The notes beneath the pieces were generated by a model. The model was not told the DNA's origin. It was given only the letters and a program-made list of their open reading frames with translations, and did no database searches. Source: Mobula hypostoma (Eukaryota). From it: DNA of 64,000 bases. Both the position numbers and the translations under genes were made by a program. Of the stretch, positions 7,565 to 47,849 are shown piece by piece (position 1 is the first letter of the stretch; each line of letters opens with the position of its first letter). The DNA is taken from NCBI RefSeq assembly GCF_963921235.1, contig NC_086118.1, positions 24,738,001 to 24,802,000 of the forward strand, in the 5' to 3' direction.

Positions 7565-9203
7565 TGTAAAGGATTTGAAAGTTGGAGGGGGAGGGGGAGA
7601 TCCAAAATGATAGGAGAAGACAGGAGGGGGAGGGATGGAGCCAAGAGCTGGACAGGTGATAGGCAAAAGGGATACGAGAGGATCATGGGACAGGAGGTCC
7701 GGGAAGAAAGACAAGGTGGGTGGGGGAACCCAGAGGATGGGCAAGGGGTATATTCAGAGGGACAGAGGGAGAAAAAGGAGAGTGAGAGAAAGAATGTGTG
7801 TATAAAAATAAGTAACAGATGGGGTATGAGGGGGAGGTGGAGCATTAGCGGAAGTTAGAGAAGTCGATGTTCATGCCATCAGGTTGGAGGCTACCCAGAC
7901 GGAATATAAGGTGTTGTTCCTCCAACCTGAGTGTGGCTTCATCTTTACAGTAGAGGAGGCCGTGGATAGACATGTCAGAATGGGAATGGGATGTGGAATT
8001 AAAATGTGTGGCCACTGGGAGATCCTGCTTTCTCTGGCGGACAGAGCGTAGGTGTTCAGCAAAGCGGTCTCCCAGTCTGCGTCGGATCTCGCCAATATAT
8101 AAAAGGCCACATCGGGAGCACCGGACGCAGTACATCACCCCAGCCGACTCACAGGTGAAGTGTTGCCTCACCTGGAAGGACCGTTTGGGGCCCTGAATGG
8201 TGGTAAGGGAGGAAGTGTAAGGGCATGTGTAGCACTTGTTCCGCTTACACGGATAAGTGCCAGGAGGGAGATCAGTGGGGAGGGATGGGGGGGACGAATG
8301 GACAAGGGAGTTGCATAGGGAGCGATCCCTGCGGAATGCAGGGGGGCGGGAGGGAAAGATGTGCTTAGTGGTGGGATCCCGTTGGAGGTGGTGGAAGTTA
8401 CGGAGAATAATACGTTGGACCTGGAGGCTGGTGGGGTGGTAGGTGAGGACCAGGGAAACCCTATTCCTAGTGGGGTGGCGGGAGGATGGAGTGAGAGCAG
8501 ATGTACGTGAAATGGGGGAGATGCGTTTAAGAGCAGAGTTGATAGTGGAGGAAGGGAAGCCCTTTTCTTTAAAAAAGGAAGACATCTCCCTCGTCCTAGA
8601 ATGAAAAGCCTCATCCTGAGAGCAGATACGGCGGAGACGGAGGAATTGCGAGAAGGGGATTTTTAAAGAAAGGGGCTTCCCTTCCTCCACTATCATCCCC
8701 TTTTCGCAATTCCTCCGTCTCCGTCTGGGTAGCCTCCAACCTGATGGCATGAACATCGACTTCTCTAACTTCCGCTAATGCCCCACCTCCCCCTCGTACC
8801 CCGTCTGTTACTTATTTTTATACACACATTCTTTCTCTCACTCTCCTTTTTCTCCCTCTGTCCCTCTGAATATACCCCTTGCCCTTCCTCTGGGTCCCCC
8901 CCACCTTGTCTTTCTTCCCGGACCTCCTGTCCCATGATCCTCTCGTATCCCTTTTGCCAATCACCTGTCCAGCTCTTGGCTCCATCCCTCCCCCTTCTGT
9001 CTTCTCCTATCATTTTGGATCTCCTCCTCCCCCTCCAACTTTCAAATCCCTTACTCACTCTTCCTTCAGTTAGTCCTGACGAAGGGTCTCGGCCTGAAAC
9101 GTTGACTGCACCTCTTCCTAGAGATGCTGCCTGGCCTGCCGTGTTCACCAGCAACTTTGATGTATGTTGCTTGAATTTCCAGCATCTGCAGAATTCCTGT
9201 TGT
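7565..9203. mobile_element. Penelope-like retroelement with inverted arrangement (GIY-YIG endonuclease region, pseudo-LTR, hammerhead motif)
   Basis: Minus-strand ORF 7845-8756 carries a GIY-YIG signature (VMYCVRCSRCGLLYIGE..R..EH..HF..E..N). Arms 7566-7902 and 8721-9054 are reverse complements. 3' end on + to ~9203. Candidate TSD TCC(C/T)ACTGAAAA at 7553-7564 and 9204-9215. Confidence 0.9.
9072..9107 (+). ncRNA. Minimal type I hammerhead ribozyme motif in PLE pseudo-LTR
   Basis: AGTC-CTGACGA-stem II-GAAAC-GTT-GACT: CUGANGA and GAAA cores, stem I AGTC/GACT, NUH triplet GUU in this copy. Confidence 0.7.
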
Positions 9204-11187
9204 TCCTACTGAAAAAGATACTTACTTTGCCCAGTCAGTTTGTTTACATGCAGTACATACATTCATATCTGCATCTAGCAAAGAACAAAATTCCCTCGTG
9301 GTTTTTGATAGTTTTTTCACAGAAATGCTAATTTTACACATGATATTCAGTGTGAGCCTGAGTGAGATCAAGTGTAAGTCTACAGATAACTGCTAAATCT
9401 CCGAGGATCCCACAATTAGCAATTTGCAGGTTATTCCAGTCAGTGATGGTTTCTCCAATTCCTTCCTTCGATTGGCTCTTAGTTTTAGTTACCAGATTTA
9501 TAGCTTTAGACAGTTTCTGAATGCACTGGATTAAAGTGAGTGCCTAATATCGTAACTGCCTCAGTGAGTAGATCAAATACCTACCAATAAATGAAATACC
9601 ACTGTTCAAATTAATTTCTACATACTAGTTTTCTTTCTTGAGTAAATCGCCCTGTTCTGCTCATTTTCTCCTCTTTCCACTGCACTATAATATCATTACC
9701 GCAGGGGGAAAAAAATCTCCATTTGCTTCAAGTATGCATTAAACAATCCTGCGTCTTGTCACAATTTAACCTTCCAATATATCCAGCCATACTCCAGTCT
9801 ACCATTTTCCTCAAGTATCATTTACCTGAACAACCTGTTCATGTAATTTGACATCTGGACGCAGTGCCACATTTTCACAGTTTCCCCAAACTCATTTAGT
9901 GTCACGTCCCATATTTTTTGCAGCCTTTAATAACTCACAAAAGGCATCAGCCACTTGACACAGTATTAACAGGTCAACTCTGCATCGAGTGGAGCTACTG
10001 TCCCATGGTGTCCCCATCTGGGTTCAACCCTGACCTTGGGCACTGTCAGCTTCAGATCCATCTATACATCATGTGTACATCAAAACAGACATTTCCGTTA
10101 ACAGCCAACACAATCTACGGCAGCCTGCAAGTATCGCTATGCATTCCAACACCAACACAACATGCCCACAACGCTTCGCAGAGCAAGACAAAACACACAA
10201 GCAACAAAACAACTACAGCAAAACAATCCCTGTTCCTCCCTCCTACACACACAAACAAACAGTTGTCCAACCCCAGGACAGGCCTCTGGGCCTCCAGCGT
10301 CCAGTGAACTTGTAGATTCACAGACACGGGGCTTCATTTTCCCCATTGGATTCACAGTGGACTCAGGGCTCTGTGTGCAGTTTGCACGTTGTACATGAAG
10401 CAAAGTGGGTTTCCTTCAAATGCTCCTTTTCCTGACACACCTCAAAGTCAGACAGGTTGGTAGGTTATTGGACATTGTAAATTGCCGATAGACGGTTAGA
10501 ATATGAGGAGATTTGAATGGAATGTGGGAAGAATTTAAAAATGCAGTTAATATAGTGTTAATGTAGGCTGTTGTTTGTCAAGGACACCATTGGCCAAAGG
10601 CCTGTTTCTGTGCTGTGTGACTCTGTGACCATGAGGTCGCAGGTTTAAGCAGCAGTGATCGTCTTGTGTGAATATGTTCACATGGAGAACTTTAAGGCCT
10701 TAGCAGGTAAAACGATACAAAATCATAGATTCTTTTATCTCAGACAGGACCTTGTTAGGCCCAGCATTTCTGTCCAAGGAATTAATTCCAATCATCACAC
10801 TTTCCACATGGCTTTACAATTTGCTTCCTCTCGATCTATTTGCGGAGGCAAGGGGAGACTCTTTCCATCCGCTCCACAAGATTCATTCCAGATGCCAGCA
10901 ACTCATTATTCCTACATCTCCCATCTGCTTCCTTTGCTGATGATCTCGAATCAATGTTCTCAGGTTACCTAACCTGCTGCCAATGATGACAGACTCTCCC
11001 TGTATTTCAAAATACCTCACCCCAAGTCCATAGAGTGATCTAATGTTACATAATAACAAATCATGGCCTTTGGACTGAAAATCTAATCTTGAATGGAATT
11101 TGCCCTCTCAGGTTGAGTTGGAGTCATGGTGAAGGCAGCAGTTCAGAGTAACATTCTTGTTGGAAGCTCCACATTCTCCTGGTTTTC

Positions 11188-14364: not shown

Positions 14365-14558
14365 TTGAGATGTAGAATGTGGCTCCATCAAACTGTGTGT
14401 CAAGACTCAGGGGTCCTCTTACTATCTCAAATGGTAATATGCCGAAAGTACTTATTGTTTTTCGACTGAAAAGTATTAAAATCAAATACTGAAATTTTGG
14501 AGTGTGAACTATAAAATACCTGCAATAAAGCTTTAATATTTGTGAAGTTTTCCTTGCT

Positions 14559-14702
14559 TCAGGACTAACGTCAGGACGAAGGGTCTCGGCCCGAAACATC
14601 GACTGTACCTCTTCCTAGAGATGCTGCCTGGCCTGCTGCGTTCACCAGCAACTTTGATGTGTGTTGCTTGTATTTCCAGCATCTGCAGAGTTCCTTGTGT
14701 TT
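14559..14702 (+). mobile_element. Short PLE 3' terminal insert (partial hammerhead region plus tail)
   Basis: GACGAAGGGTCTCGGCCCGAAAC..GCATCTGCAGAGTTCC matches 9078-9200; preceded by small inverted PLE pieces TCAGGACTAAC and GTCAGGA. Confidence 0.85.
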
Positions 14703-17800: not shown

Positions 17801-20800
17801 GATGAGCCTAAAGTTTGCCTAGAAGTTTAAATACTCCAAATAAACCAGCCGAAATGAGCTGTGCTGATATTATGAAAGTAATTCAGGAACATATAGAACC
17901 AAAACTATTGTCATTTGCAGAATGATTTATGTTTCATAAGTGGATAAAAAGGAATGGGAGTCCAGTTCATCTTAATTGAGGAAATTGAGTAGCTGAATTG
18001 AAGAAATTGTCTGAGCATTGTCAGTTCAGTTATTAGCTTATTGATGCACTGAGAGATTATTTAGTTTGTTGAATCTTACAAGAAAGCATTCAAAAACAGC
18101 TCCTTACTGAAGCACAACTCACATTTAAAAGAGCAGTTGAAATTGAAGTATCAATAGAAACAGCAGCTAAAGATTCAATTGAGTTGCACACAGGAACCTA
18201 CCTGGCCAAGCAAATTGTGTGACTGTTATGGCAGGGGTTCACATACACTAGACCAGGATTAGAGTCAAAACTTGCAGAATAGAACAAAGTAGGAAACATA
18301 TAAAAAGCATATTGGGCAGAAAAAAAATAAATAGACTGCACAGGGAAGAGATAAAGATAAAAAGTCAAATTCCAATTTCAAAAAGAGCACTAGTCTGCAT
18401 GCTGTTGATGAAAAATCTGATAATGATAAGAGTAATACAGGACAGAGTAGCCTTAAGATTTACAATGCAAAAAGTAACCATAGGACAAGGAATATGGCTT
18501 ATACCAGAAGTGGACATCAAATTAATTAAAAGGGAATTGGACACAGGCTCCCCTGTATCTGTCATTCTACAAAATGAGCTTGAACAGATTTTCAGATACT
18601 GAACTGAAACCTACAGATATCCAACTAAGAACTTATAATGGAGAAAAGGTAACTTCTATTGGAATGACATCTGTAACAGTGAAACACAACAACCAACAAG
18701 CCATATTGGGCTTGTATGAGGTTAAAAGCAGGAAGACAAGCATTGTGGAACAGTGATTGGATGTGACAACTGCAATATAACTAGTGATGCATCCACTATC
18801 TCTATACCTCATCCCCTGCAAAGGAGTGAACTGAAAGTGGATTAAGAAAGGTACTGGATAATGCCACATTCCTCAAGGGTGGCATTGGGAAACTCAAGCA
18901 TCAGGGTAAAATAGTGTTAAATGACAATGGCACACCAAGGTTTTACAAAGCCTGTCTGATTCCTTAAACCATCTTTGAGAAGATGGCCGGTGAGCCAGAT
19001 CACATGAAAGCTGAAGGAATTCTGTCCAAGTTTGAGTGGAGCATGTAGGCAATCACAGTCATTCCAGGAGCCAAGAATGATTGGTCTGTCAGGATCTGTG
19101 GTGATTTTAAGGTCACCATCAACTCAGTACTGAACGTAGATCAATCCCTTCTGCCAGGAGAGAGAGTATCTTTTCAAACCTTTCAGCAAATTGGATTTAG
19201 CTGAGGCCTACCTACAGAGATGGAAAAATAGTCCAAAGTTTTTTTCACCATAAACACTCACAGAGGGCCTTATTGCTATAATAGACTTAGTTTTGGCATA
19301 GCATTTGCATCTGCACTTAGGCAGAAAGCTATGGACCAGGGACTGAGTGCAACCAGGATGACATCTTTTTTACCAATGTGGATGACAAGGAACAACGCCA
19401 AAATCTCAAGACACTGTTAAAAAGATTACTATGTTATTGGCTCCGAACACAACCCAAATGTGAATTCTTGAAACCAAGCTTCACTAATTGTAGTCACACC
19501 TTTGACTCACAAGATTTACACAGGTGTGCTGTGAAAATTCAAGCCGTGCTGGATGCTCCAAGGCCAAAGGACATGTCACTGTTGCAGTAATTTCTAAGAA
19601 TTTGTCAATTACTATAACAGGTTCCTGCCAAACCTGGCTACTGTGCTCCACTCCTTGAACTCACCACTATGGATCGGGAAGAAATGGCAAAGGACAAAGT
19701 AGTGCGTGGTGGATTTCCAAAAGACAAAGGAAGTGGCGATGTCAGGCGCTGTACTCAGACATTATACGTCCACATGTGAAGCTTGTTTGTGACACCTTGC
19801 CTTATGGTATAGATGCAGACGTATCACATGTTATGAATGATGGAAGTGAACACTCTATAGCCTTTGCATCACATTCCCTTACAGCTGCAGAGAAAAATTA
19901 TGCACAGAGGCCTTGAGTCTGGGGTGTAAAACATTTCAACCAGTACTTGTATGGGGGAGAGTTTGTCCTCAATACTGATCACCAACCACTAGTTTTAATT
20001 CCACCTCCCATTCCCCTTCTGACATGTCTATCCACGGCCTTCTCTACTGTAAAGATGAAGCCACCCTCAGGTTGCAGGAACAACACCTTACATTCCGTCT
20101 GGGTAGCCTCCAACCTGATGGCATGAACATTGACTTCTCTAACTTCCGCTAATGCCCCACCCCCCCATCGTACCCCATCTGTTACTTATTTTTATACACA
20201 TATTCTTTCTCTCACTCTCCTTTTTCTCCCTCTGTCCATCTGAATATACCCCTTGCCCATCCTCTGGGTCCCCCCCCCTTGTCTTTTTCCTGGACCTCCT
20301 GTCCCATAATCCTCTCGTATCCCTTTTGCCTATCACCTGTCCAGCTCTTGGCTCCATCCCTGCCCCTCCTGTCTTCTCCTATCATTTTGGATCTCACCCT
20401 CCACCTCCAACTTTCAAATCCCTTACTCACTCTTCCTTCAGTTAGTCCTGACGAAGGGTCTTGACCTGAAACGTCGACTGCACCTCTTCCTAGAGATGCT
20501 GCCTGGCCTGCTGCATTCACCAGCAACTTTTATGTGTGTTACCAACCACTAGTGTCCATTTTCAATCCACAGAAGGTTATTCTACTTAACAGCAGCAGCA
20601 CAAATGCAGAGATGGGCTCAGTTTCTTGGAGGACACAATTACAAGATCAAATTCACGGAAATGCTGACGGATTGGTCTGTTTACCCTTGGAAAAAGGAAA
20701 TACTTGAAAAATTTCCAAAGCAGGGCTCTCCTCTTGACATATTCTCCCTCTCACGGCACAGATGATCCAAAGGGGAACTAGAAAAGACCCCACACTGTCT

Positions 20801-21403: not shown

Positions 21404-23878
21404 AATTATCACACAAGGATTTACGTCATTCTTACGTACTTCTCTGAGATGTGTATAATTAAACAATCTGCCAAAAATGACACTAGTAATGTTGGCTTTT
21501 GTTTTACATCAACCTCTAATTGTCCCTGAATTAAATCACAATTAAGAATCAAGGTCCAGAATCACATACTGATCAGAGCAGATGAAGATTAGAAAATATT
21601 TTCCTTGAAGGATGTTAAAGCAAATGGATTCTTACATTCCACTGGTTTGGTGGCTGCTAAAACTCGCTTTTTAAAATAAAAATCCAGATACTTAATCACC
21701 TGAATTTGAATTCTTCAGTTGGCATGGAAAGATTCAAACTCATACCTCTGCATCAATGGTATAGAATACTGGTTGCTAATCTCGTAACTACCGGCATAGT
21801 TACTGCTACTTACTGTCTTTGTTAGTGCAGACAGCAAATAATTGGAGCGGAAAATAGACATAATATGTTGAGGAGATAAACGGTTTAATTTTAGGAGGCT
21901 TTTTCCTGCAATGTTTATTGAAAATCAATATCCTGTTCTCAGTGGTGGGTACCTACAACAACTGTTAGTGCTGTGCACATCAAAGAATTAACATCTGCTG
22001 AAAATTTGTTATTTCAACAGTGTAATTTTGGTGCACTTTGCATGCCCTCAGTGTGTCCCAAAATATCTCTAACCCAAAAAAAAATGTCACTGAATGTTGG
22101 CACTGCTGTTACATAGGTGAACTGCTAATATGCACAGTAAGTTGTGATAAGCAGCAGTGAAAAGAATGTGAAAATAATCTGTTCTGCTTTTCTTCTTCTG
22201 AGGCAATCCCTTTGAAAATATCAAGCATTATATTTGTTGCATGGTGCAGCATACAGGGAAAGGAGGCCCTGTGACTTAGTCCTGCTTCTATCCAATTTTT
22301 AATGTCACCCTCTCCCTAAATTTAAAAGAAAATAGTCTTAAATTATATTTCACAGGGCAGTGGGTTGCCGACTCTGACTAGATGGATAACAAGTGATGCA
22401 CGCCAATTGATAATGACATTTCATTCTCATTGCATTGTCCCGGCCAGCACATTAAATATGGTCCTTTGGGAGCTGCTGACATCTGTGGATTTTGCACTGG
22501 TGTCATCACAACAACATCAACACCACGAACTGAGGATCAGAGGTAGTGTGGACTTCAAGCTCAATGCAGCAAGTTAGGCCGAAGGGATTACAGTACTTCC
22601 ACTCTGTGCGACTCTGCATCTTAAACAACAGGCTAAAGTCTTTTATAGCACTAATTAAAACAGCAAAAACTTACCAGTGGATTCCAATTAAAAACTACAG
22701 ATGATTGTTTAAGCACTGCTCTGCTTTAGAACTGGAATATAAAACATGACTTGCTAAGTTTAAACTTTATAATTCAAGTCATCTTCAACATGAGAGAAAT
22801 ATATACTTATGCCCATGTCACAACATTTACAAAGATTCTGACACACAAACAGCCTGAAGCCTTCCCTAACCATTCACAACCACAAAAGGATGGCTGCATC
22901 ACAATCTTTTTGCTATACTTAAACAACATTTTTGTTTTAGATTAATAACACTTACGTTATCAATGTATACAGTGCCGATAAAATGTATTCAACCCCCCCG
23001 TGGAAGTTCCCATGTGCTATTATTTTACAATATTGAATCACAGTGGATTTAATTTGGCTTTTTTGATACTGAAAAGGACTCTTTTGTGTCAAAGAGAAAA
23101 CAGTTTTCGATAAAGTGATCTAAATTAATTACAGCTATAAAACACAAAATAATTGATTGCAGAAATATTCACCCCCTTCAAGTCAGTCTTCAGTAGATGC
23201 ACCTTTGGCAGCAAGTATAGCTTTGAGTCTGTGTGGATAGGTCTCTATCAGCTTTGCACATCTAGACACTGCAACTTTTCCCCAATCTTCTTTACAAAAC
23301 TGCTCAAGCTGTGTCAGATTGCATGGGGATCATGAGTGAACAGCACTTTTTAAGTCCAGCCACAAACTCTCAATTGGATTGAAGTCTGGACTCTGACTTG
23401 GCCACTCCAGGACATTAACTTTGTTGTTGTTAAGCCATTCCTGTGTAAATTTGACTTGGGGTCATTGTCTTACTGGAAAATAAATATGTTCCCAAGTCGC
23501 AGTTCTCTTGCAGACTGCATCAGGTTTTCCTCCAGGATTTCCCTGTATTTTGCTGCATTTATTTTACCCTCTGCCTTCACAAGCTCTCATGGCCTGCTGC
23601 AGTGAAGCATCCCCACAGCATGATGCAGCCACCACCATGCTTCACGTTAGGGATGGGGTGTTTCTGATAATGCACAGTTTTTGGCTTATGCCAAACATAG
23701 TGTTTAGTCTGATGGCCTAAAAGCACAATTTTGGTTTCATCAGACCATAGAACCTTCGTCCAGCTGACTTCACAGTCTCCCACATGCCTTCTGGCAAACT
23801 CTAGCCATGATTTCATGCGAGTTTTTTTCAGTAATGGGCTTTCTGTTTGCCACTCTCCCACAGAGTTGCAACTGGTGA

Positions 23879-26800
23879 CAGTGATGGTAAGAATTGGAGG
23901 AGATGGCAGTTGAATGCGTGGCTGAGGAGTTGGTGCAGGGAGCAGAGTTTCAGATTTTTAGATCATTGGGATCTCTTCTGGGGAAGGTGGGACCTGTACA
24001 GATTGGATGGGTTGCACCTGAACTCGAGGGGGAGCAATATCCTTGCAGGTAGGTTTGCTAGTATGGTTCGGGAGGGTTTAAACTAATTTGCAAGGGGAAT
24101 GGGACCCAGAGCGATAGAGCAGTGAAAGAAGTGCACGGAGCAAAGCCAGATCTAACTTACAGAGAGGCTTTGAGGAAAGAGAAGCAGAATAAACGGTGTA
24201 AAGACAGTAAGGTAGAAGGGCTGAAATGTGTGTACCTCAATGCAAGAAGCATCAGGAACAAAGGTGATGAACTGAGAGCTTGGATACATACATGGAATTA
24301 TGATGTAGTGGCCATTACAGAGACTTGGTTGGCACCAGGGCAGGAATGGATTCTCAATATTCCTGGATTTCAGTGCTTTAAAAGGGATAGAGAGGGCGGG
24401 AAAAGGGGAGGAGGGGTGGCATTACTGGTCAGGGATACTATTACAGCTACAGAAAGGGTGGGTAATGTAGCAGGATCCTCTTTTGAGTCAGTATGGGTGG
24501 AAGTCAGGAACAGGAAGGGAGCAGTTACTCTATTGGGGGTATTCTATAGGCCCCGTGGTAGCAGCAGAGATACAGAGAAGCAGATTGGGAAGCAGATTTT
24601 GGAAAGGTGCAAAAATAACAGGGTTGTTATCATGGGTGACTTTAACTTCCCTAATATTGATTGGCACCTGATTAGTTCCAAGGGTTTAGATGGGGCAGAG
24701 TTTGTTAAGTGTGTCCAGGATGGATTCCTGTCACAGTATGTGGACAGGCCGACTAGGGGGAATGCCACACTAGATCTAGTACTAGGTAATGAACCGGGTC
24801 AGGTCACAGATCTCTCAGTGGGTGAGCATCTGGGGGACAGTGACCACTGCTCCCTGGCCTTTAGCATTATCATGGAAAAGGATAGAATCAGAGAGGACAG
24901 GAAAATTTTTAATTAGGGAAAGGCAAATTATGAGGCTATAAGGCTAGAACTTATGGGTGTGAATTGGGATGATGTTTTTGCAGGGAAATGTACTATGAAC
25001 ATGTGGTCAATGTTTAGAGATCTCTTGCGGGATGTTAGGGATAAGTTTATCCCAGTGAGGAAGATAAAGAATGGTAGGGTGAAGGAACCATGGGTGACAA
25101 GTGAGGTGGAAAATCTAGTCAGGTGGAAGAAGGCAGCATACATGAGGTTTAGGAAGCAAGGATCAGATGGGTCTATTGAGGAATATAGGGAAGCAAGAAA
25201 GGAGCTTAAGAAGGGGCTGAGAAGAGCAAGAGGGCATGAGAAGGCCTTGGCAAGTAGGGTAAAGGAAAACCCCAAGGCATTCTTCAATTATGTGAAGAAA
25301 ACAAGGATGACAGGAGTGAAGGTAGGACTGATTAGAGATAAAGGTGGGAAGATGTGCCTGGAGGCTGTGGAAGTGAGTGAGGTCGTCAATGAATACTTCT
25401 CTTCAGTATTCACCTATGAGAGGGAACTTGATGATGGTGAGGACAATATGAGTGAGGTTGATGTTCTGGAGCATGTTGATATTAAGGGAGAGGAGGTGTT
25501 GGAGTTGTTAAAATACATTAGGACAGATAAGTCCCCAGGGCCTGATGGAATATTCCCCAGGCTGCTCCCCGAGGCAAGAGAAGAGATTGCTGAGCCTCTG
25601 GCTAGGATCTTTATGTCCTCGTTGTCCACGGGAATGGTACCGGAGGACTGGAGGGAGGCCAATGTTGTCCCCTTGTTCAAAAAAGGTAGTAGGGATAGTC
25701 CGGGTAATTATAGACGAGTGCACCTTACATCTGTGGTGGGAAAGCTGTTGGAAAAGGTTCTTAGAGATAGGATCTATAGGCATTTAGAGAATCATGGTCT
25801 GATCAGGGACAGTCAGCATGGCTTTGTGAAGGGCAGATCGTGTCTAACAAGCCTGATAGAGTTCTTTGAGGAGGTGACCAGGCATATAGATGAGGGTAGT
25901 GCAGTGGATGTGATCTATATGGATTTTAGTAAGGCATTTGACAAGGTTCCACACGGTGGGCTTATTCAGAAAGTTAGAAGGCATGGGATCCAGGGAAGTT
26001 TGGCCAGGTGGGTTCTGAATTGGCTTGCCTGCAGAAGGCAGAGGGTGGTAGTGGAGGGAGTACATTCAGATTGGAGGATTGTGACTAGTGGTGTCCCACA
26101 AGGATCTGTTCTGGGACCTCTACTTTTCGTGTTTTTATTAACGACCTGGATGTGGGGGTAGAAGGGTGGGTTAGCAAGTTTGCAGACGACACAAAGGTTG
26201 GTGGTGTTGTAGATAGTGTAGAGGATTGTCAAAGATTGCAGAGAGACATTGATAGGATGCAGGAGTGGGCTGAGAAGTGGCAGATGGAGTTCAACCCGGA
26301 GAAGTGTGAGGTGGTACACTTTGGAAGGACAAACTCCAAGGCAGCGTACAAAGTAAATGGCAGGATACTTGATAGTGTGGAGGAGCAGAGGTATCTCAGG
26401 GTACATATCCACAGATCCCTGAAAGTTGCCTCACAGGTAGATAGGGTAGTTAAGAAAGCTTATGGGGTATTAGCTTTCATAAGTCAAGGGATAGAGTTTA
26501 AGAGTCGCGACGTAATCATGCAGCTCTATAAAACTCTGGTTAGGCCACACTTGGAGTACTGTGTCCAGTTCTGGTCACCTCACTATAGGAAGGATGTGGA
26601 AGCATTGGAAAGGGTACAGAGGAGATTTACCACGATGCTGCCTGGTTTAGAAAGTATGCATTATGATCAGAGATTAAAGGAGCTAGGGCTTTACTCTTTG
26701 GAGAGAAGGAGGATGAGAGGAGACATGATAGAGGTGTACAAGATAATAGGAGGAATAGATAGAGTGGATAGCCAGTGCCTCTTCCCCAGGGCACCACTGC

Positions 26801-27076
26801 TCAATACAAGAGGACATGGCTTTAAGGTAAGGGGTGGGAAGTTCAAGGGGGATATTAGAGGAAGGTTTTTTACTCAGAGAGTGATTGGTGCGTGGAATGA
26901 ACTGCCTGAGTCAGTGGTGGAGGCAGATACACTAGTGAAGTTTAAGAGACTACTAGACACGTATATGGAGGAATTTAAGGTGGGGGTGTATATGGGAGGC
27001 AGGGTTTGAGGGTCAGCATAACATTGTGGGCCAAAGGGCCTGTACTGCGCTGTACTATTCTATGTTCTATGTTCTA
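23879..27076 (+). mobile_element. CR1 LINE, 5'-truncated within ORF1 (esterase end), near-complete ORF2 (APE + RT)
   Basis: DGLHLN motif; APE motifs (NARSI, ITETW, GDFN, SDH); RT motifs (GVPQGSVLGP, FADD); stop at 24914-24916 and frameshift near 26135; (TTCTATG)n tail; TSD TGGTGA 23873-23878 and 27077-27082. Confidence 0.95.
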
Positions 27077-27528
27077 TGGTGAAGCACCCGGGCAACAGTT
27101 ACTGTATTCGCAGTCTCTCCCATCTCAGGCACTGAAGCTTGTAACTCCTCCAGAGTTGTGAGGCCTCCCTCACTAGTCTCCTTCTTGCATGGGTCACTCA
27201 AGTTTTTGAGGATGGCTTGCTCTAGGCAGATTTATAATTGTGTCATATTCTTGATGATTGACTTAACTGTACTCCAAAGGATATTCAGTGGCTTGGAAAT
27301 TTTCTTGCATCCATCTTCCGATTTGTGCTTTTCAATAGCCTTTTCACGGAGTTGCTTGGAGTGCTCTTTTGTCTCCATGGTGTAGTTTTTGCCAGGATAC
27401 TGACTCCCTAGTAGTTGGACCTTCCTAACACAGGTGTATTTTTACAACAATCAATTGAAACACCTTAACTGCATACAGGTGATCTCCATTTAACAAATTA
27501 CATGACTTTAAAACCAATTGGTGCACTA

Positions 27529-27618
27529 TACATCAAAGTTGCTGGTGAACGCAGCAGGCCAGGCAGCATCTATAGGAAGAGGCGCAGTCGACGTTTCAGG
27601 CCGAGACCCTTCGTCAGG
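27529..27618 (-). mobile_element. 90-bp PLE terminal insert containing the hammerhead core
   Basis: Reverse complement reads CCTGACGAAGGGTCTCGGCCTGAAACGTCGACTG..CAACTTTGATGTA, matching 9075-9164. Confidence 0.9.
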
Positions 27619-28629
27619 CTTGCGTACCTAGACAGCTAGGACACGACGTCCATGGTTGACCCTGACCGACGGAGGGTTCATCACTAAGTTGTTCTGTATT
27701 TCAATAAATACATAATTTGTTATTCAGTTAAGTGATAGGTTTATCTTTTTTAATACCTTTTTAACTTTTCTGTGACACCTCAGCTAATTGGGACAGCTGT
27801 TTAATTAGGTAAGAATGTACTGGGCCTGATAAATCCCAATTATCAAGAATCCACTGTGTATTCATTTTAGGGACAAAATAACAGCAGACCCAACATACTG
27901 TGCCTATAAAAAGTATTCACACCCTCTTGGAAGTTTTCATATTTTATTGTTTTACAACATTGATTCACAGTGGATTTAATTGGCTTTTTTGACACTGATC
28001 AACAGAAAAAGATTCACGTTAAAGTGAATACAAAGTGATCTAAATTAATCACAAATGTAAAAACAAAATAATTGATTGCATAAGTATTCACCTCCGTTAA
28101 TATGACACACCAAATCATCACTAGTGCACCCTTTGGTGTGTCATATTAACGGAGGTGAATACTTATGCAATCAATTATTTTGTTTTTACATTTGTGATTA
28201 ATTTAGATCACTTTGTATTCACTTTAACGTGAATCTTTTTCTGTTGATCAGTGTCAAAAAAGCCAATTAAATCCACTGTGAATCAATGTTGTAAAACAAT
28301 AAAATATGAAAACTTCCAAGAGGGTGTGAATACTTTTTATAGGCACAGTATATTGGGTCTGCTGTTATTTTGTCCCTAAAATGAATACACAGTGGATTCT
28401 TGATAATTGGGATTTATCAGGCCCAGTACATTCTTACCTAATTAAACAGCTGTCCCAATTAGCTGAGGTGTCATAGAAAAGTTAAAAAGGTATTAAAAAA
28501 GATAAACCTATCACTTAACTGAATAACAAATTATGTATTTATTGAAATACAGAACAACTTAGTGATGAACCCTCCGTCGGTCAGGGTCAACCATGGACGT
28601 CATGTCCTAGCTGTCTAGGTACGCAAGCC
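27617..28629. repeat. Near-perfect inverted repeat: 498-bp arms, 17-bp spacer
   Basis: 27617-28114 is the reverse complement of 28132-28629, about 3 mismatches by eye; spacer TCATCACTAGTGCACCC. Confidence 0.95.
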
Positions 28630-29503
28630 AGGGCAGTACAATATGGAGAGCAAGCTGTTGCCCGTGTAGCAAGTCCCCCTCCTCCCCCATGTAACTGATG
28701 AACCCAAAGAAATGGTAGAGACTGATACAGCTTGGCACCAGCAGTGACCCAGGAGCTCCCAGTCAGTGTTGAACTTAGCATAGGATTGCATTAGGGACTC
28801 CAGCTCTGGAATTTTCCCCTCAGGCTTTACTTCCAAAGCTTTCCCCATAAGTGGGTATAGTTGCAAGGCAGTGGAGGTTTGAAATCAAAGTTTTCCTTCT
28901 CCTAGGTGAGTCGCCAACTACGGCAATTTAATACATTACTAATATTACCACCATACTATAAAACTGTATTGGTTCCTAATAGTTAACTATGGCAGAATTC
29001 ATCCAGCGTACGCGGCTGTGTTATTTTGATTGAGTGTAACTGAACAAGATCAGCAGAGTCACCTAGGTCAGATAATGAGCTTTCGATGATTGCATCTTCC
29101 AAGTACTCATTTTCATTGTAACATTCAAGATTATCATAACCTTCAAGTGCTTCATTGTTCCTAACTTGAAGTAGTGAAATCATTTCACTGTCACTGCCGG
29201 CTGTGCCTAGCATCTCCAAGCCCAAAGCTAGTTAGAAACCGTTCATCAAGTCTCCTGTCCCAATCAGTCCCAAAGAAACAAAGGGAATCCTAGCTATTTT
29301 CTTGATTAGTTTTTGTTCTTTAAGAGTTGTCCCAAATAAGGGGCTGACCCAATTAACTGATTGACCAGAATTGAGAGTATCATGCACTGAGTAATAAGCA
29401 ATTACATGCATGGATTCATAATATAATCCATTTGTCAGTTTTGTATTTGGGTAACAAAGGGGGAAATAAAAGCAAATTGCCAGCTTTGAATGGGAATATA
29501 TTA

Positions 29504-32783: not shown

Positions 32784-35700
32784 TCTCATAAACAGGTTCA
32801 CCCTCTTGGAAGCTGTTGGGACAGAAGATGATGCCAGCCTGAGAGGCGGTCAGGTCTGCGAGTCAACAATTGGCACTGAAGCAAAGCCGAGGAGACAGAC
32901 GTCAGGCAGAGCCGTGGTAGTAGGGGACTCCATAGTGAGAGGTACAGAAAGGGGTTTCTGTGGCAACAGGCGAGATTTAAGGATGGTGTGTTGCCTCCCT
33001 GGTGCCGGGATCCAGGATGTCATGGACCGATTGCAGGGAATCCTCAAGAGTGAAGGTGAACATCCGGAAGTGGTGGTGCATGTTGGCACAAATGACATGA
33101 GGAAGAAGAGGAAAGACATTCTACAGCGTGACTTCAGAGAACTCGGAAGAAGTCTGAAAAGCAGGACTTCCAGGGTGGTTATCTCCGGTTTGCTTCCAGT
33201 TCCTCGTGCTGGAGTGGGCAAGAACAGGGAGATAATGGATCTGAATGTGTGGCTGAGGAACTGGTGCAGGAAGCAAGGATTTACATTCTTGGACCATTGG
33301 GGTATGTTTCGGGGTAAGGATGAATTGTACAAAAGGGACGGGTTGCACCTTAATAAGCGGGGCACCAGCATTCTGGCAGGCAGGTTTGCCTCTGCAACAC
33401 GGGTGTGTTTAAACTAAGTAGTGGGGGGGGGGAGGGGACAAACTGGAAACATAAGGATGGAGATAAAGGGAAAGTGAGAATAAGAAAAGTTAAGAAAGAC
33501 AGCAGAATCAACAGAGCAGAAAGCTCAAGAAGGGATCATACAGTATGGCCAAGTGAAATAGGAATCGATATGGGAGGTGAGGGGAGTAATGAATTAAAAG
33601 TATTATATATGAATGCATGGAGTATAAGAAATAAAGTGGACGAGCTTGAGGCACAGCTGGAAGTTGTTAAGTATGATGTTGTGGGAATAACAGAGACATG
33701 GCTTCAAGTGGACCGGGCCTGGGAAATGAATATTCAAGAGTATACGTCCTATCGAAAGGACAGACTGATGGGCAGAGGGGGTGGGGTGGCTCTGTTGGTG
33801 AGGAATGATATTCAGTCCCTTGCTAGGGGGGACATAGAATCAGGAGACGTAGAGTCAGTATGGATAGAACTGAGAAATTCTAAGGGTAGAAAGACTCTAA
33901 TGGGAGTTATCTACAGCCCCCCAAACAGTAGTCTGGATGTAGGGTGTAAATTGAATCAAGAGTTAAAATTGGCATGTCGCAAAGGTAATGCTACAGTTGT
34001 TATGGGGGACTTCAACATGCAGGTAGACTGGAGGAATCAGGTTGGTGCTGGACCCCAAGAAAGGGAGTTTGTGGACTCCCTCCGAGATGGATTCTTAGAA
34101 CAGCTTGTACTGGAGCCTACCAGAGAGAACGCAATTCTAGATTTAGTGTTGTGCAATGAACCGGATTTGATCAGGTACCTCGAGGTAAAGGAGGTAGTGA
34201 CCATAATATGATAAGTTTTAATCTACAATTTGAGAGGGAGAAGGGAAACTCGGAAGTGTCAGTATTACAGTTGAACAAGGGAACTATGGTGCTATGAGGG
34301 AGGAGCTGGCCAAAGTTCAATGGAACAATACCCTAGCAGGGATGACAGTGGAACAGCAACGGCAAGTGTTTCTGGGAATAATGCGGAAGGTGCAGGATCA
34401 GTTCGTTCCAAAGAGGAAAAAAGATCCTAAGGGGAGGCCGTGGCTGACAAGGGAAGTAATGGACAGTATAAAAATAAAAGAGAAGAAGTATAACATAGCA
34501 AAGACGAGTGGGAAGCCGAAGGACTGGGAAACTTTTAAAGAGCAACAGAGGTAACTAAGAAGGCAATACGTGGAGAAAAAATGAGGTACGAAGGTAAACT
34601 AGCCAAGAATATAAAGGAGGATAGTAAAAGCTTCTTTAGGTATGTGAAAAGAAAAAAAATAGTTAAGACCAAAATTGGGCCCTTGAAGACAGAAACGGGT
34701 GAATTTATTATGGGAAACAAGGAAATGGCAGACGAGTTGAACAGGTACTTTGGATCTGTCTTCACTAGGGAAGACACAAACAATCTCCCAGATATAATAG
34801 TGGCTGAAGGACCTAGGGTAATGGATGAACTGAAGGAAATCTATATTAGGCAGGAAATGGTGTTGGATAGACTGTTGGGTCTGAAGGCTGATAAGTCCCC
34901 GGGACCTGATGGTCCGCATCCCAGGGTACTTAAGGAGGTGGCTTTAGAAATTGTGGATGCATAGGTAATCATTTTCCAATGTTCTATAGATTCAGGATCA
35001 GTTCCTGTGGATTGGAGGGTGGCTAATGTTGTCCCTCTCTTCAAGAAGGGAGGAAGAGAGAAAACAGGGAATTATAGACCGGTTAGCCTGATGTTGGTGG
35101 TGGGAAAGATGCTGGAGTCAGTTATAAAAAATGAAATTATGACACATCTGGATAGCAGAAACAGGATCGGTCCAAGTTAACATGGATTTACGAAGGGGAA
35201 ATCGTGCTTGACTAATCTTCTGGAATTTTTTGAGGATGTAACTGTGAAAATGGACAAGGGAGAGCCAGTGGATGTAGTGTACCTGGACTTTCAGAAAGCC
35301 TTTGATAAAGTCCCACATAGGAGATTAGTGAGCAAAATTAGGGTACATGGTATTGGGGCAGAGTACTGACATGGATTGAAAATTGGCTGGCTGACAGAAA
35401 ACAAAGAGTAGTGATTAATGGGTATATTTCGGAATGGCAGGAGGTGACCAGTGGGGTACCGCAGGGTTCAGTGCTGGGACCGCAGCTGTTTACAATATAT
35501 ATTAATGATTTAGATGAGGGAATTAAAAGTAACATTAGCAAATTTGCCGATGACACAAAGCTAAGTGGCAGTGTGAAATGTGAGGAGGATGTTATGAGAA
35601 TGCAGGGTGACTTGGACAGGCTGGGTGAGTGGGCAGATGCATGGCAGATGCAGTTTAATGTGGATAACTGTGAGGTTATCCACTTTGGTTGTAAGAACAG

Positions 35701-40992: not shown

Positions 40993-43937
40993 ATGGAGGC
41001 TGAGGAATTTATAAAGGCGCCAACCTTGAAGGCATTAGAGGATGCCAGGAAATCGGAATTGGTAGCTGTGGCCAAACGGTTGAATCTTGCTAAGGTGAAG
41101 TCGACAATGAAGAGAGAGGAGATACACAGAGCTATCGTAGAGCACTATGTATCTAAGGGTGTGTTTCCCCAAGGCGAGCTGGGGGTGGTGTCTATTGAAA
41201 AACCTGCTGGAGACGCGGTACAGGTGCAGCTTGAAAAACTGAGACTCGAGCACGAGTTCCGGGTACGACAATTGGAGCGAGAAGAGAAGGAGAGAGAGGT
41301 AGAAAGACAAGAGAGAGAGAGAGACAGTTGGAGAGAGAAGAGAAAGAGAGAGACAGACAGTTGGAGAGAGAAGAGAAAGAGAGGGACAGACAGTTGGAGA
41401 GAGAGGAGAAACAGAGGGAAAGGGAATTCGAATTGGAGAAGTTAAGGTTAAGGGCAGAGCAGGGGCTCGTGCCGAACCAAGGTGGAGGGTTCCGGGCGAC
41501 CCAGGAGGTTAGGCTGGTTCCCCCATTTGACGATACCGACGTGGATCGGTACTTTCTCCACTTCGAAAAAGTGGCTATAAGTCAGGACTGGCCGAGGGAT
41601 AAGTGGGTTGTTTTACTTCAGAGTGTACTGAAAGGGAAAGCCCAAGAAGCTTACTCCGCTTTGTCCGTGGAAGATGCCCAGAGGTATGAGGTGGTGAAAG
41701 AGGCCATCCTCAGGATTTATGAGTTGGTCCCAGAGGCATACCGGCAGAGGTTCCGGAATGCGAGGAAGCAGTGGGACCGCACGTATTTGGAGTTTGCCCG
41801 TGAGATGCAGACATATTGTGAGCGTTGGTGCGTCTCAAAGGGGGTAGAGGGGGATTATGACAGACTGCTACAGCTGATCCTGATTGAGCAGTTTAAAGGT
41901 TGTGTCCCTGAGGGTATGAGACCCTACCTCGATGAGAAAGAGGCAGCCACGTTAGCCGCAACTGCTAAGTTAGTGGATGAGTATGCGTTGATGCATAAAA
42001 TGAAGTTTGCCCCGAGTAAAGGCTACCAGAAGGGTAGTCAGGACGGCGGGGAGAGTCCGCCGGAAAAGTCAGAAAGTAAGCCGGGGACTAGTGAGAAGGA
42101 TAAGGTAGACCAGGAGCAGTCTGGCAGGAAGTCTCCTGGGGTCGTCTGTTATAATTGTGGGAAAGCCAGACACTTTGCGTCCAGGTGCTTTGCCCCAAAG
42201 AAGGAGACGGGAAAAGGAAAAACAGCGATTTTGCATGGCTGTATCGAGCTGTTAAGCGAACCGCTAGGGAAGGGCAGGTCTGCCAAGGTTCAGGAAGGGC
42301 GCGAGAGGTTTATCTCGGCCGGATTGGTGTCAGTGAAGGAGGGGTTAAAACCAGTTCCAGTGCGGATCTGGAGAGACACGGGAGCGTGTTAGTCACTAAT
42401 ACTGAAGAGTGTATTAGAGTTTAGCTCAGAGACCCAGACTGGGGAGGTAGAGGTCAAAGGTGTTGGGGAAGGGACAGAGTCAGTCCCTTTGCACCAGATA
42501 CACTTACAAAGCAACCTGGTCTCTGGACTAGTCACGATCGGGGTGAGGTCCGAATTACCGATGAAAGGCGTGGAAGTCTTGCTCGGTAATGACATCGCCG
42601 GGGGAATCGTGTTCCCAGTCGTGAGATTGACAGGTCAGCCTGCCAGCAGTAAGGCCCCGCCCATGGACTCACAGGTTCATCATGGGGCTGCGGTAGTGAA
42701 TTTAGCTGCGGTGGTAAATTTAGCTGAAACGTTTCTACCAGTCTTGTACGAGACGGGGGTAGAAAATGAAAAGGAGTGTAGTGAGACAAAAGGTAGTGAG
42801 GGAGCTGGGACAGACATAGCAGTAGCCAGGAAAGAATTTGTGCAGACACAGGAGCGACACGAGGAGCTGATGGTTTCGGCAGAGACAGCTCTCTCTGACA
42901 CAGCTTTGACAAGGGATCTAGTAGGCTATTGTGTGGAGAAGGAAGTGCTAAGGAAAAAAGGGAAATCAAGTACAGTACCCACAGATGAGGAGTGGGGGGT
43001 GGTGCAAAAGAGTTATGGGGACGAGGTTCTTAACATGGCCCACGAGGTACCCCCCGGTGGACATTTTGCGGTGCTGGAGGAAACAGTTGGTGGAATCATG
43101 AAAGAGGTTTACCGACTGCCCAGGAGGAAGGATGTTATTGATCATGACCGACGCGAACTGAGACGGTCACCGGCTTTTGATCTGCTAACAAACCTAGTCG
43201 GTGTTAGCGTGGAAATCAATGAAGCTAGGGGCCCCCTGATAAGAGAAAAAAACCATTTTGAAAAGATTAGTATGGGATCGATCAGATGGAAGAAGGCTAT
43301 TGTTTTGGCCAGGTCTACTGATAAGGTCTCTTCCTTAATCCCCGAACAAAGCGACTCTCTAGGAGTAATTAAACGACTCGCACCCGTGTGGTTGATTGTC
43401 CCGAGGCAATGCAAAGAACTGGGACGTTGGGTGATGTCTGTTACGATAGGTCAGCCTAGCAAACAACATCCATATATAATGAGTAATTCAGTGACTAAAG
43501 GGCTGATGAACACAGAGGTGTGTATTGGCAATTTAATACGGCTGTCTGAAGTCAGCTTGATAGTGAACCTTGAAAAAAATGAATTCGGCCACATGAGGGT
43601 CACTTACCTGGGAATTGTGGTGACACAGGGGCAGCTGGCAGCGATGCAAGCTACAGTGCAGGCTATCGCTGACCTCCCAACCCCGACAGACAAGAGAGCC
43701 CTCAGAAGGTTCTTGGAGATGGTGGGGTACTATAGGAAGTTTTGCAATAACTCTGCGGTCACTACCCCTCCCCCTCCTACTAAGCCCTTGCGAGAGAAAA
43801 CTAAGTCAGAATGGGACAACCCATGTTATTGTGGTCCGGGACAAAACCAAATGAGAGGTTACATTGATCGAAATTCATCAGTGTTTTTGGCCACTATGAA
43901 ATTTGCTGAGTTGGAGCCTGGTCTAAGGGATTATTAA
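40993..43937 (+). pseudogene. gag-(deleted)pol of the Gmr1-like element
   Basis: ATG 40993; frameshift in a GA-rich repeat ~41310; 'YELVPEAYRQRFR..LILIEQF' SCAN-like capsid; CYNCGKARHFASRC; WRDTGAC then TAG 42390-42392; same frame resumes to 43937. Confidence 0.85.
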
Positions 43938-47757: not shown

Positions 47758-47849
47758 AGACGAAGGGTCTCGGCCTGAAACGTCGACTGCGCCTCTTCCT
47801 ATAGATGCTGCTTGGCCTGCTGCGTTCATCAGCAACTTTGATGTATGTT
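47758..47849 (+). mobile_element. 92-bp PLE terminal insert
   Basis: Matches 9078-9168; TSD ACCC(G/A)TAGAAC 47747-47757 and 47850-47860. Confidence 0.88.

Follow-up and report, generated by a model that had tools for sequence, protein, structure and literature searches.

Inverted duplications of genomic DNA beside a new retroelement copy have been described for L1, where they lie on the reciprocal end of the break (Mendez-Dorantes et al., bioRxiv 10.1101/2024.12.14.628481, Fig. 4D,E). In the model offered for them, the 5' strand of the far end is resected, and the 3' tail folds back, primes its own extension and joins the complementary DNA (cDNA) of the element through about 2 base pairs (bp) of homology; such retrotransposition-coupled flank inversions and inverted duplications are documented in induced cell clones and in cancer genomes (10.1101/2024.12.14.628481). 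In the Penelope class of retroelements, adjacent inverted copies are a hallmark, insertions often carry an inverted 5'-truncated copy, and the origin of the inverted and tandem structures has been called undefined (PMC8557442). Autonomous Penelope-like copies encode a reverse transcriptase (RT) of the telomerase-like type and a GIY-YIG endonuclease. No published report was found that ties these elements to an inverted duplication of host DNA. Here we describe a locus in a stretch of 64,000 nucleotides (nt) from the ray Mobula hypostoma (RefSeq assembly GCF_963921235.1, contig NC_086118.1, positions 24,738,001 to 24,802,000; the whole stretch is hereafter called the window). At this locus, a 90-nt Penelope-type insert within a Tc1/Sleeping-Beauty-like DNA transposon abuts a 514-nt inverted duplication of the transposon end and its flank. 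With a probability of about 0.65, the insert and the inverted duplication are the product of one aberrant Penelope-type target-primed insertion into Tc1, and we regard the locus, whether fixed or segregating, as a germline counterpart in the Penelope class to the inverted duplication of the reciprocal end known from L1.

An inverted-repeat search returned two arms of 498 nt that are 99% complementary and separated by a spacer of 17 nt, a palindrome of about 1 kb (Table 1). On the plus strand, the Tc1 interior (...AATT GGTGCACTA) is followed by the 90-nt repeat, a 514-nt segment (27617-28130), a single C, the segment 28132-28629 and the right flank. A script determined the length of the inverted copy as 514 nt, of which 16 nt extend beyond the left arm to position 28130; the reverse complement of 27617-28130 opens with GGTGCACTA, GTGATGA and TTTGGTGTG. 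The heptamer GTGATGA is kept in the inverted copy only, and the direct copy restarts at TTTGGTGTG. At the opposite end, the GG at 27617-27618 fits the end of the insert (...CGTCAGG) as well as the arm (reverse complement of ...GCAAGCC). An earlier reading of the same DNA, here called the original prediction, had described the palindrome correctly, coordinates included, and search and script bore out its further claims of an inverted duplication of about 514 bp, of the reverse complement of 27520-27528 as the last stretch of this duplication (found at 28122-28130), of GG/CC sharing between the left arm and the last two nucleotides of the insert, and of the loss of GTGATGA from the direct strand.

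Some details of the joints deserve mention. The boundary between the insert and Tc1 is uncertain by 1 nt, since A27528 fits either side. Position 27519 is a T on the plus strand, so the ancestral base after the inverted nonamer was an A, unlike the C at 28131, which is probably an untemplated addition at the joint. The two arms differ at three positions, all of them transitions (27894/28352, 27772/28474 and 27644/28602). The inverted duplication also yields a pair of Tc1 ends in inverted orientation (27896-28350), each of about 217 nt and flanked by TA, with the 17-nt spacer between them; in form, this pair resembles a miniature two-ended Tc1 derivative.

Table 1 Features of the palindromic locus and of its target, in coordinates of the window
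Feature	Position	Strand	Remarks
Tc1/Sleeping-Beauty-like DNA transposon, target of the event	22970-28348	-	TA flanks at 22968-69 and 28349-50; termini CAGTGCC / GGCACAG
Nonamer before the insert (n'), GGTGCACTA	27520-27528	+	9 target nt; probable primer end and would-be target duplication
Penelope-type insert, 90 nt	27529-27618	- (sense)	From the hammerhead core CCTGACGAAGGG... to ...CTTTGATGTA
GG microhomology	27617-27618		Common to the insert and the inverted copy
Left arm	27617-28114	+	Inverted copy of 28132-28629; 495/498 match to the reverse complement of the right arm
Left arm, copy of the flank	27617-27895	+	
Left arm, TA	27896-97	+	
Left arm, copy of the Tc1 end	27898-28114	+	
Heptamer (s), TCATCAC	28115-28121	+	Reverse complement of GTGATGA, the 7 nt lost from the direct copy
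Inverted nonamer (n), TAGTGCACC	28122-28130	+	Inverted copy of 27520-27528, 'inverted target duplication'
Single C	28131		Accounted for by neither copy
Right arm, original orientation	28132-28629	+	Tc1 end 28132-28348, TA 28349-50, flank 28351-28629
Right flank outside the palindrome	28630-28990		High-copy repeat

The target shows the hallmarks of the Tc1/mariner group, namely a TA duplication, long terminal inverted repeats and a Tc1-type transposase. The long terminal repeats match each other at 75% over some 210 nt, and the N-terminal 48 amino acids (aa) of the transposase match the Pfam model HTH_SB with 43.7 bits (cut-off 43); the open reading frame (ORF) of the transposase is disrupted by stops and frameshifts. 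The element is broken up by the 603-nt block of insert and inverted copy and by a long interspersed nuclear element (LINE) of the apurinic/apyrimidinic endonuclease (APE) type at about 23880-27010, which has matches to Exo_endo_phos (4e-20) and RVT_1 (3.5e-21) on the plus strand at 24122-27009.

In read contigs, other copies of Tc1 read ...TAGTGCA(G)CCAATTGG across the insertion point without interruption, and contigs of other family members are unbroken through ...CCAAATCATCACTAGTGCA(G)CCAATTGGTTTTA... (loose ends at 28128; opposite-strand joints 27500>28128). Since the contigs of the family are unbroken, the order Tc1 end-TCATCAC-TAGTGCACC-AATTGG is native to Tc1. The pre-insertion target, taken from the inverted copy and from the other family members in the read contigs, read ...AATT GGTGCACTA GTGATGA TTTGGTGTG..., and the reconstruction of this site in the original prediction agrees with those family members. 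The right arm carries on the minus-strand Tc1 of 27011-27528 after a gap of 7 nt and includes the TA of the transposon. A contig of a related organism (28297-28599, 5 differences) has the same junction between Tc1 and flank. On account of the continuity of Tc1 and TA and of the junction shared with the relative, the right arm is the original and the left arm the copy. A window-wide BLAST search found no other copy in the window of the inner part of Tc1, of the flank 28351-28629 or of the right flank.

The family of the insert was searched within the window, where its copies occur at about one per 10 kb. Four copies of the 38-nt core of the insert were present (0 expected), and BLAST placed copies of the insert at about 9075, 14575, 20447 and 47759 with identities of 93-98%. 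In read contigs the summed word depth is about 4e6 at 27518-27591, which marks the repeat as extremely abundant. The boxes CUGACGA, GAAAC and GUC follow one another in hammerhead order on the sense strand in 5/5 copies (the minus strand for the focal copy), which suggests a hammerhead ribozyme in this family at the level of the motif. No hammerhead family from Rfam was recovered, either at the gathering threshold on the whole window or at E<=10 on two of the copies, and the minimum-free-energy single-strand fold of the motif held no hammerhead; the minimal, dimer-dependent hammerheads of the Penelope class would be expected to escape both approaches.

Two classes of 3' ends, about 38-40 nt apart, were observed among the copies, the long one at 9078 and 14575 and the short one at 20450 and 47759. 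They match the optional 'tail' of 30-40 nt in Penelope-like elements, and purified Penelope protein yields such a 'tail' from two reverse-transcription start sites (PMC11167929). The window further contains adjacent inverted copies of the Penelope type, with arms at 7566-7903 and 8720-9054 that are 96-97% alike. Together, the two 3' end classes and the adjacent inverted copies argue for a Penelope-type family. The window has 20 ORFs that reach 150 aa or more, and none of them was found to be an ORF for a GIY-YIG endonuclease or a Penelope RT; in the nine of them scanned against Pfam, the only RT and endonuclease domains were those of APE-type LINEs.

Both ends of the focal insert compare well with those of its relatives. 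Three short copies (14575, 47759 and the focal insert, 27618) all have their element 5' end at most 3 nt from GACGAAGGG, inside the hammerhead core. At its 3' end (...GATGTA), the focal insert stops 4-7 nt short of ...GATGTATGTTACC, the short-tail end seen in the copies at 20450 and 47759. The insert therefore has the termini of a real short insertion and not those of an arbitrary fragment. A plain short insert at 47759 has a TAGAAC duplication on both sides; the focal insert is without a target duplication. The 5' end common to the short copies lies upstream of the expected ribozyme cut after GUC, at a distance of 26-29 nt, and is therefore not the site of self-cleavage.

Other copies of the family in the window have features of their own. 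In the Penelope-type unit at 7566-9204, the arms are separated by about 816 nt that include nested inverted repeats (8540-8575/8660-8695 and 8632-8660/8695-8723), and a 303-aa ORF over this spacer (7845-8756, minus strand) has no Pfam match. The insert at 14575 is preceded at 14530-14575 by an inverted piece of about 20 nt from the hammerhead-proximal region of the element (…CTTCAGGACTAAC…), a miniature inverted arm that lacks its own 3' end. No inverted repeats of host DNA were seen beside the other Penelope copies of the window at 14575, 20450 and 47759. The right flank from 28630 on was considered as a continuation of the Penelope insert, as hinted by a joint 27618>28641 that has only 23 nt on one side, and rejected: longer copies continue with ACTAACTGAAGG instead.

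Judged from the sequence, a single event is by far the simplest reading of the locus. Through the 2-nt microhomology, the element 5' end of the insert runs into the outer end of the inverted copy. The inner end of that copy lies 9 nt beyond the priming site, and the would-be target duplication is thereby present as an inverted repeat. TCATCAC and TAGTGCACC stand side by side in the inverted copy, and their direct counterparts are now split by the insert; what served as template was therefore the target before it was split, or its two ends at breakage. The original prediction had also joined insert and inverted duplication into one event, and the lack of an own target duplication, the GG fusion, the 9-nt overlap and the contiguity of heptamer and nonamer all support this part of it. 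Its second part named the Penelope RT, or coupled repair, as the copier of genomic DNA; that the RT did this copying goes beyond what can be read from the nucleotides.

Several known processes produce comparable structures. In twin priming of L1, which Ostertag and Kazazian reportedly described in 2001, both break ends prime, and microhomology joins the nascent 3' ends to give an inversion at the 5' end of the element. Twin priming inverts element sequence copied from RNA and duplicates no host DNA, whereas host DNA is duplicated at the present locus. In break-induced fold-back inverted duplication, as Al-Zain et al. are said to have found in 2023, a resected 3' tail anneals to itself and is filled in. 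Through centre-break stabilisation, the centres of palindromes gain small asymmetric deletions. Neither fold-back duplication nor centre-break events need a retroelement, whereas the outer edge of our locus is capped by a canonical retroelement fragment. With the reciprocal-end duplication of L1, the locus shares a reverse-transcribed insert at the primed end, inverted DNA from the far side of the break, a short breakpoint overlap that is kept (here 9 nt), a microhomology of about 2 bp (here GG), a hairpin-sized spacer and a small loss of target. It differs from the L1 case in its element, which is of the Penelope type (GIY-YIG class), in its origin from the ray germline instead of cultured or cancer cells, in the orientation of the spacer, which is opposite to that of a simple fold-back, and in a spacer joint with one untemplated base in place of microhomology. 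Common to the locus and to the head-to-head pairs and inverted 5'-truncated copies of Penelope (PMC8557442) are the element family, the tail-less 3' end that points outward and the inverted partner at the element 5' end. In contrast to those pairs, the partner arm consists of host DNA (Tc1 end and flank), and a direct target duplication is missing.

The insert lies antisense on the plus strand with the element 3' end next to the nonamer 27520-27528, and it starts in the reverse-transcription start zone of the family. This polarity therefore identifies the plus-strand 3' end ...GGTGCACTA as the primer of reverse transcription. In the mechanism that we propose, the endonuclease of the element would make a staggered cut in the target with an overlap of 9 nt, and target-primed reverse transcription would add the 90 nt to the left end. 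A stagger with 3' overhangs, as argued for L1, would leave TAGTGCACC overhanging on the other break end, and this predicted overhang is the tip of the inverted copy. The right ('reciprocal') end would not be joined directly; a fold-back or hairpin cap with fill-in would convert it into the inverted duplication. Alternatively, the nascent cDNA end would copy the 5'-ended strand of the reciprocal end back to the break and thereby produce the same duplication. Joining mediated by the GG/CC microhomology would close the locus. Two other candidates were rejected. Had the first cDNA snapped back, the duplicated DNA would be the insert with the left flank instead of the right flank. Hairpin formation by the Tc1 transposase does not fit a break about 220 nt inside the element and a duplication that takes in 279 nt of flank.

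A number of observations weigh against one Penelope-type insertion. The locus is a single one, the evidence for its junctions comes from one sample, neither an empty allele nor an allele of a second individual was seen, and the centre (28115-28131) is in no listed contig. The 3' end of the insert falls 4-7 nt short of the commonest short-tail end, and its motif was left unscored by the Rfam hammerhead models. Moreover, the inversion joint is not that of a fold-back: simple fold-back priming in the style of L1 would put the extra 16 nt in the arm by 28630, from which they are absent, and they are seen in the insert-proximal arm. A step beyond simple fold-back priming is therefore needed, and four routes, worked out on paper, could provide it. 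In the first (a), a hairpin-capped far end would receive a nick at 514 nt from the tip, and strand-displacement synthesis would then unfold it. In the route of the original prediction (b), the 3' end of the cDNA would pair through GG/CC with the 5'-ended target strand and copy it up to the break, which requires a 5'-ended strand that starts at 27520-27528, for example after 9 nt of displacement synthesis. A symmetric palindrome might also have formed first and then lost 16 nt on one side of its centre (c), or the spacer might have been flipped later by recombination between the arms (d). The sequence fits all of these routes, and also cDNA from a transcript of the locus.

The DNA of the far end may have been copied by the RT of the element or by host repair. 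Remodelling of the far break end by the host, through a fold-back or hairpin with fill-in, would fit as well as copying by the Penelope RT. Involvement of the element's enzyme in the copying is plausible, if unproven, in view of the inverted pairs in the family and of the extension of both strands in vitro: purified Penelope protein cleaves and extends both target strands (PMC11167929). The specific proposal that the Penelope RT let go of its RNA at the hammerhead core, switched to target DNA with 2 nt of pairing and synthesised a DNA-templated copy of 514 nt is tentative and, in our estimate, rather doubtful.

The main alternatives to one aberrant Penelope insertion differ in the origin of the break and in the number of events. 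If the break was not made by the element, template switching at stalled forks or microhomology-mediated break-induced replication (FoSTeS/MMBIR), or else fold-back repair, would have made the inverted duplication and taken up 90 nt of Penelope sequence, either as cDNA or as the DNA of another copy, for templated filler. A short insert, a 2-nt microhomology, one untemplated base, a small deletion and the lack of a target duplication are typical of such repair, and with so abundant a repeat donors are everywhere. Random filler, however, should not have both of its ends where genuine short insertions end (at most 3 nt away at the 5' end, within the start zone at the 3' end). The 90 nt are also oriented as expected for priming by the neighbouring 3' end, and the two break ends overlap by 9 nt in a way that resembles a staggered endonuclease cut, all of which makes repair with filler unlikely. 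An ordinary Penelope insertion next to an unrelated inverted duplication, earlier or later, with a coinciding boundary is very improbable. Chance neighbours do occur at about one repeat copy per 10 kb, and palindromes may attract breaks, but two independent events would need a nucleotide-exact coincidence twice, at the 5' end of the insert and 9 nt past its 3' junction. An ordinary insertion would also bring a target duplication, which this insert does not have, and the contiguous heptamer and nonamer of the copy were taken from a target still unsplit or just then being split. Little credence is likewise given to the left arm as a second cDNA, for which a dimeric enzyme would have primed both strands as usual and its second subunit would have copied a read-through transcript of the locus (sense to Tc1) in place of element RNA, with the 3' ends of the two cDNAs pairing through GG/CC in the manner of normal head-to-head pairs. 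This account needs no flip to explain all the polarities, and it attributes the 7-nt loss to a stagger with 5' overhangs; Penelope protein does extend both strands (PMC11167929), and Penelope elements have been reported to retrotranspose host genes in trans (PMC8557442). Against it stand a transcript without supporting evidence, an initiation 16 nt 'downstream' of the nick without homology, and a stagger that is atypical for a family that normally makes target duplications.

An artefact of assembly or library, such as a fold-back chimeric read or mis-joined haplotypes, is the least probable explanation of all. Palindromes are a known artefact of long-read libraries, and the confinement to one sample and the unseen centre would suit it. 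The joint between Tc1 and the insert is nevertheless crossed by the Logan contigs 27449-27554 and 27464-27551 from two runs (X1 and X2), and the joint between the insert and the left arm by the contig 27594-27722 (run X1), all with 0 mismatches; the latter, at a depth of 8.6, includes the left-arm base at 27644. Each junction contig has less than 31 nt on its repeat side, as the contigs break within the high-copy repeat. Their depth is 8.6-10, like that of their neighbours. Contigs of the arms reach 10.3-10.8; this is not doubled, though a doubling is expected for two collapsed arms, and the zygosity is left unsettled by depth. Two further runs of the same sample (X4 and X24) each hold 1/3 of the sampled words of a 60-nt junction-only query; all runs with the junction derive from a single sample, from which the assembly was probably made. 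The three differences between the arms and the junction contigs at ordinary depth argue against an assembly artefact, and an artefactual fold-back would not set a canonical retroelement fragment at the outer edge. The original prediction had named a fold-back read or assembly artefact as one possible refutation; what was found instead were arms that differ at three sites and outer junctions at normal depth in several runs, in one sample and with the centre unseen.

Beyond the palindrome, the right flank at 28628-28701 has a summed word depth of about 1e5, compared with about 1e1-1e2 in unique parts, and moderate repetition (about 1e3-1e4) is seen over the outermost 80-100 nt of the arms. The right flank 28630-28990 has no other copy in the window, and its 83-aa ORF has no Pfam match. 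A second LINE endonuclease fragment is located at 33405-34211. Of the remaining ORFs, one of 317 aa at 492-1445 contains an Apolipoprotein A1/A4/E domain (8e-70) and probably represents a large coding exon from an apolipoprotein gene of the host. The ORF 41328-42392 contains a SCAN domain (1.2e-13), and behind it lies an ORF of 482 aa (42489-43937) that has no Pfam match; together, 41328-43937 may be a SCAN-bearing gene of host or transposon-derived origin.

The three transitions between the arms indicate that the locus has aged since the event. The arms diverge by 3/498 (0.6%), compared with 5/303 and 3/304 between M. hypostoma and the related organism in adjacent sequence. At face value, the event would be younger than the split from the related organism, in which an empty site would be expected, although gene conversion between the arms could mask a greater age. 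A junction query of 60 nt (3 words sampled) found holders only in the single sample described above, which is no proof of absence from the related organism.

The integration of Penelope elements is poorly understood, and in the only in-vitro study, cleavage and extension were seen on both target strands (PMC11167929). A mis-insertion with host DNA as its second arm is in effect a frozen intermediate, in which both break ends would have been free at the event, the far end actively extended or remodelled, and the cDNA end joined through very short homology. The locus would thereby extend the L1 finding, that retrotransposition remodels the flank into inverted duplications, to a second, unrelated class of retroelements and to the germline of a vertebrate. 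That Penelope elements generate host palindromes in general, as the original prediction suggested, is offered as a hypothesis, for which this one locus is the basis. Should the RT have jumped onto DNA as outlined above, the fold-back step behind the head-to-head pairs of Penelope could also work on host DNA, and ray genomes would repeatedly gain new host-DNA hairpins from Penelope, possibly as precursors of small RNAs or of elements resembling miniature inverted-repeat transposable elements. The product at hand is a hairpin-forming repeat of 498 bp that includes about 217 bp of the Tc1 terminal repeat. If it is transcribed, the hairpin would, speculatively, give rise to double-stranded RNA against the Tc1 family.

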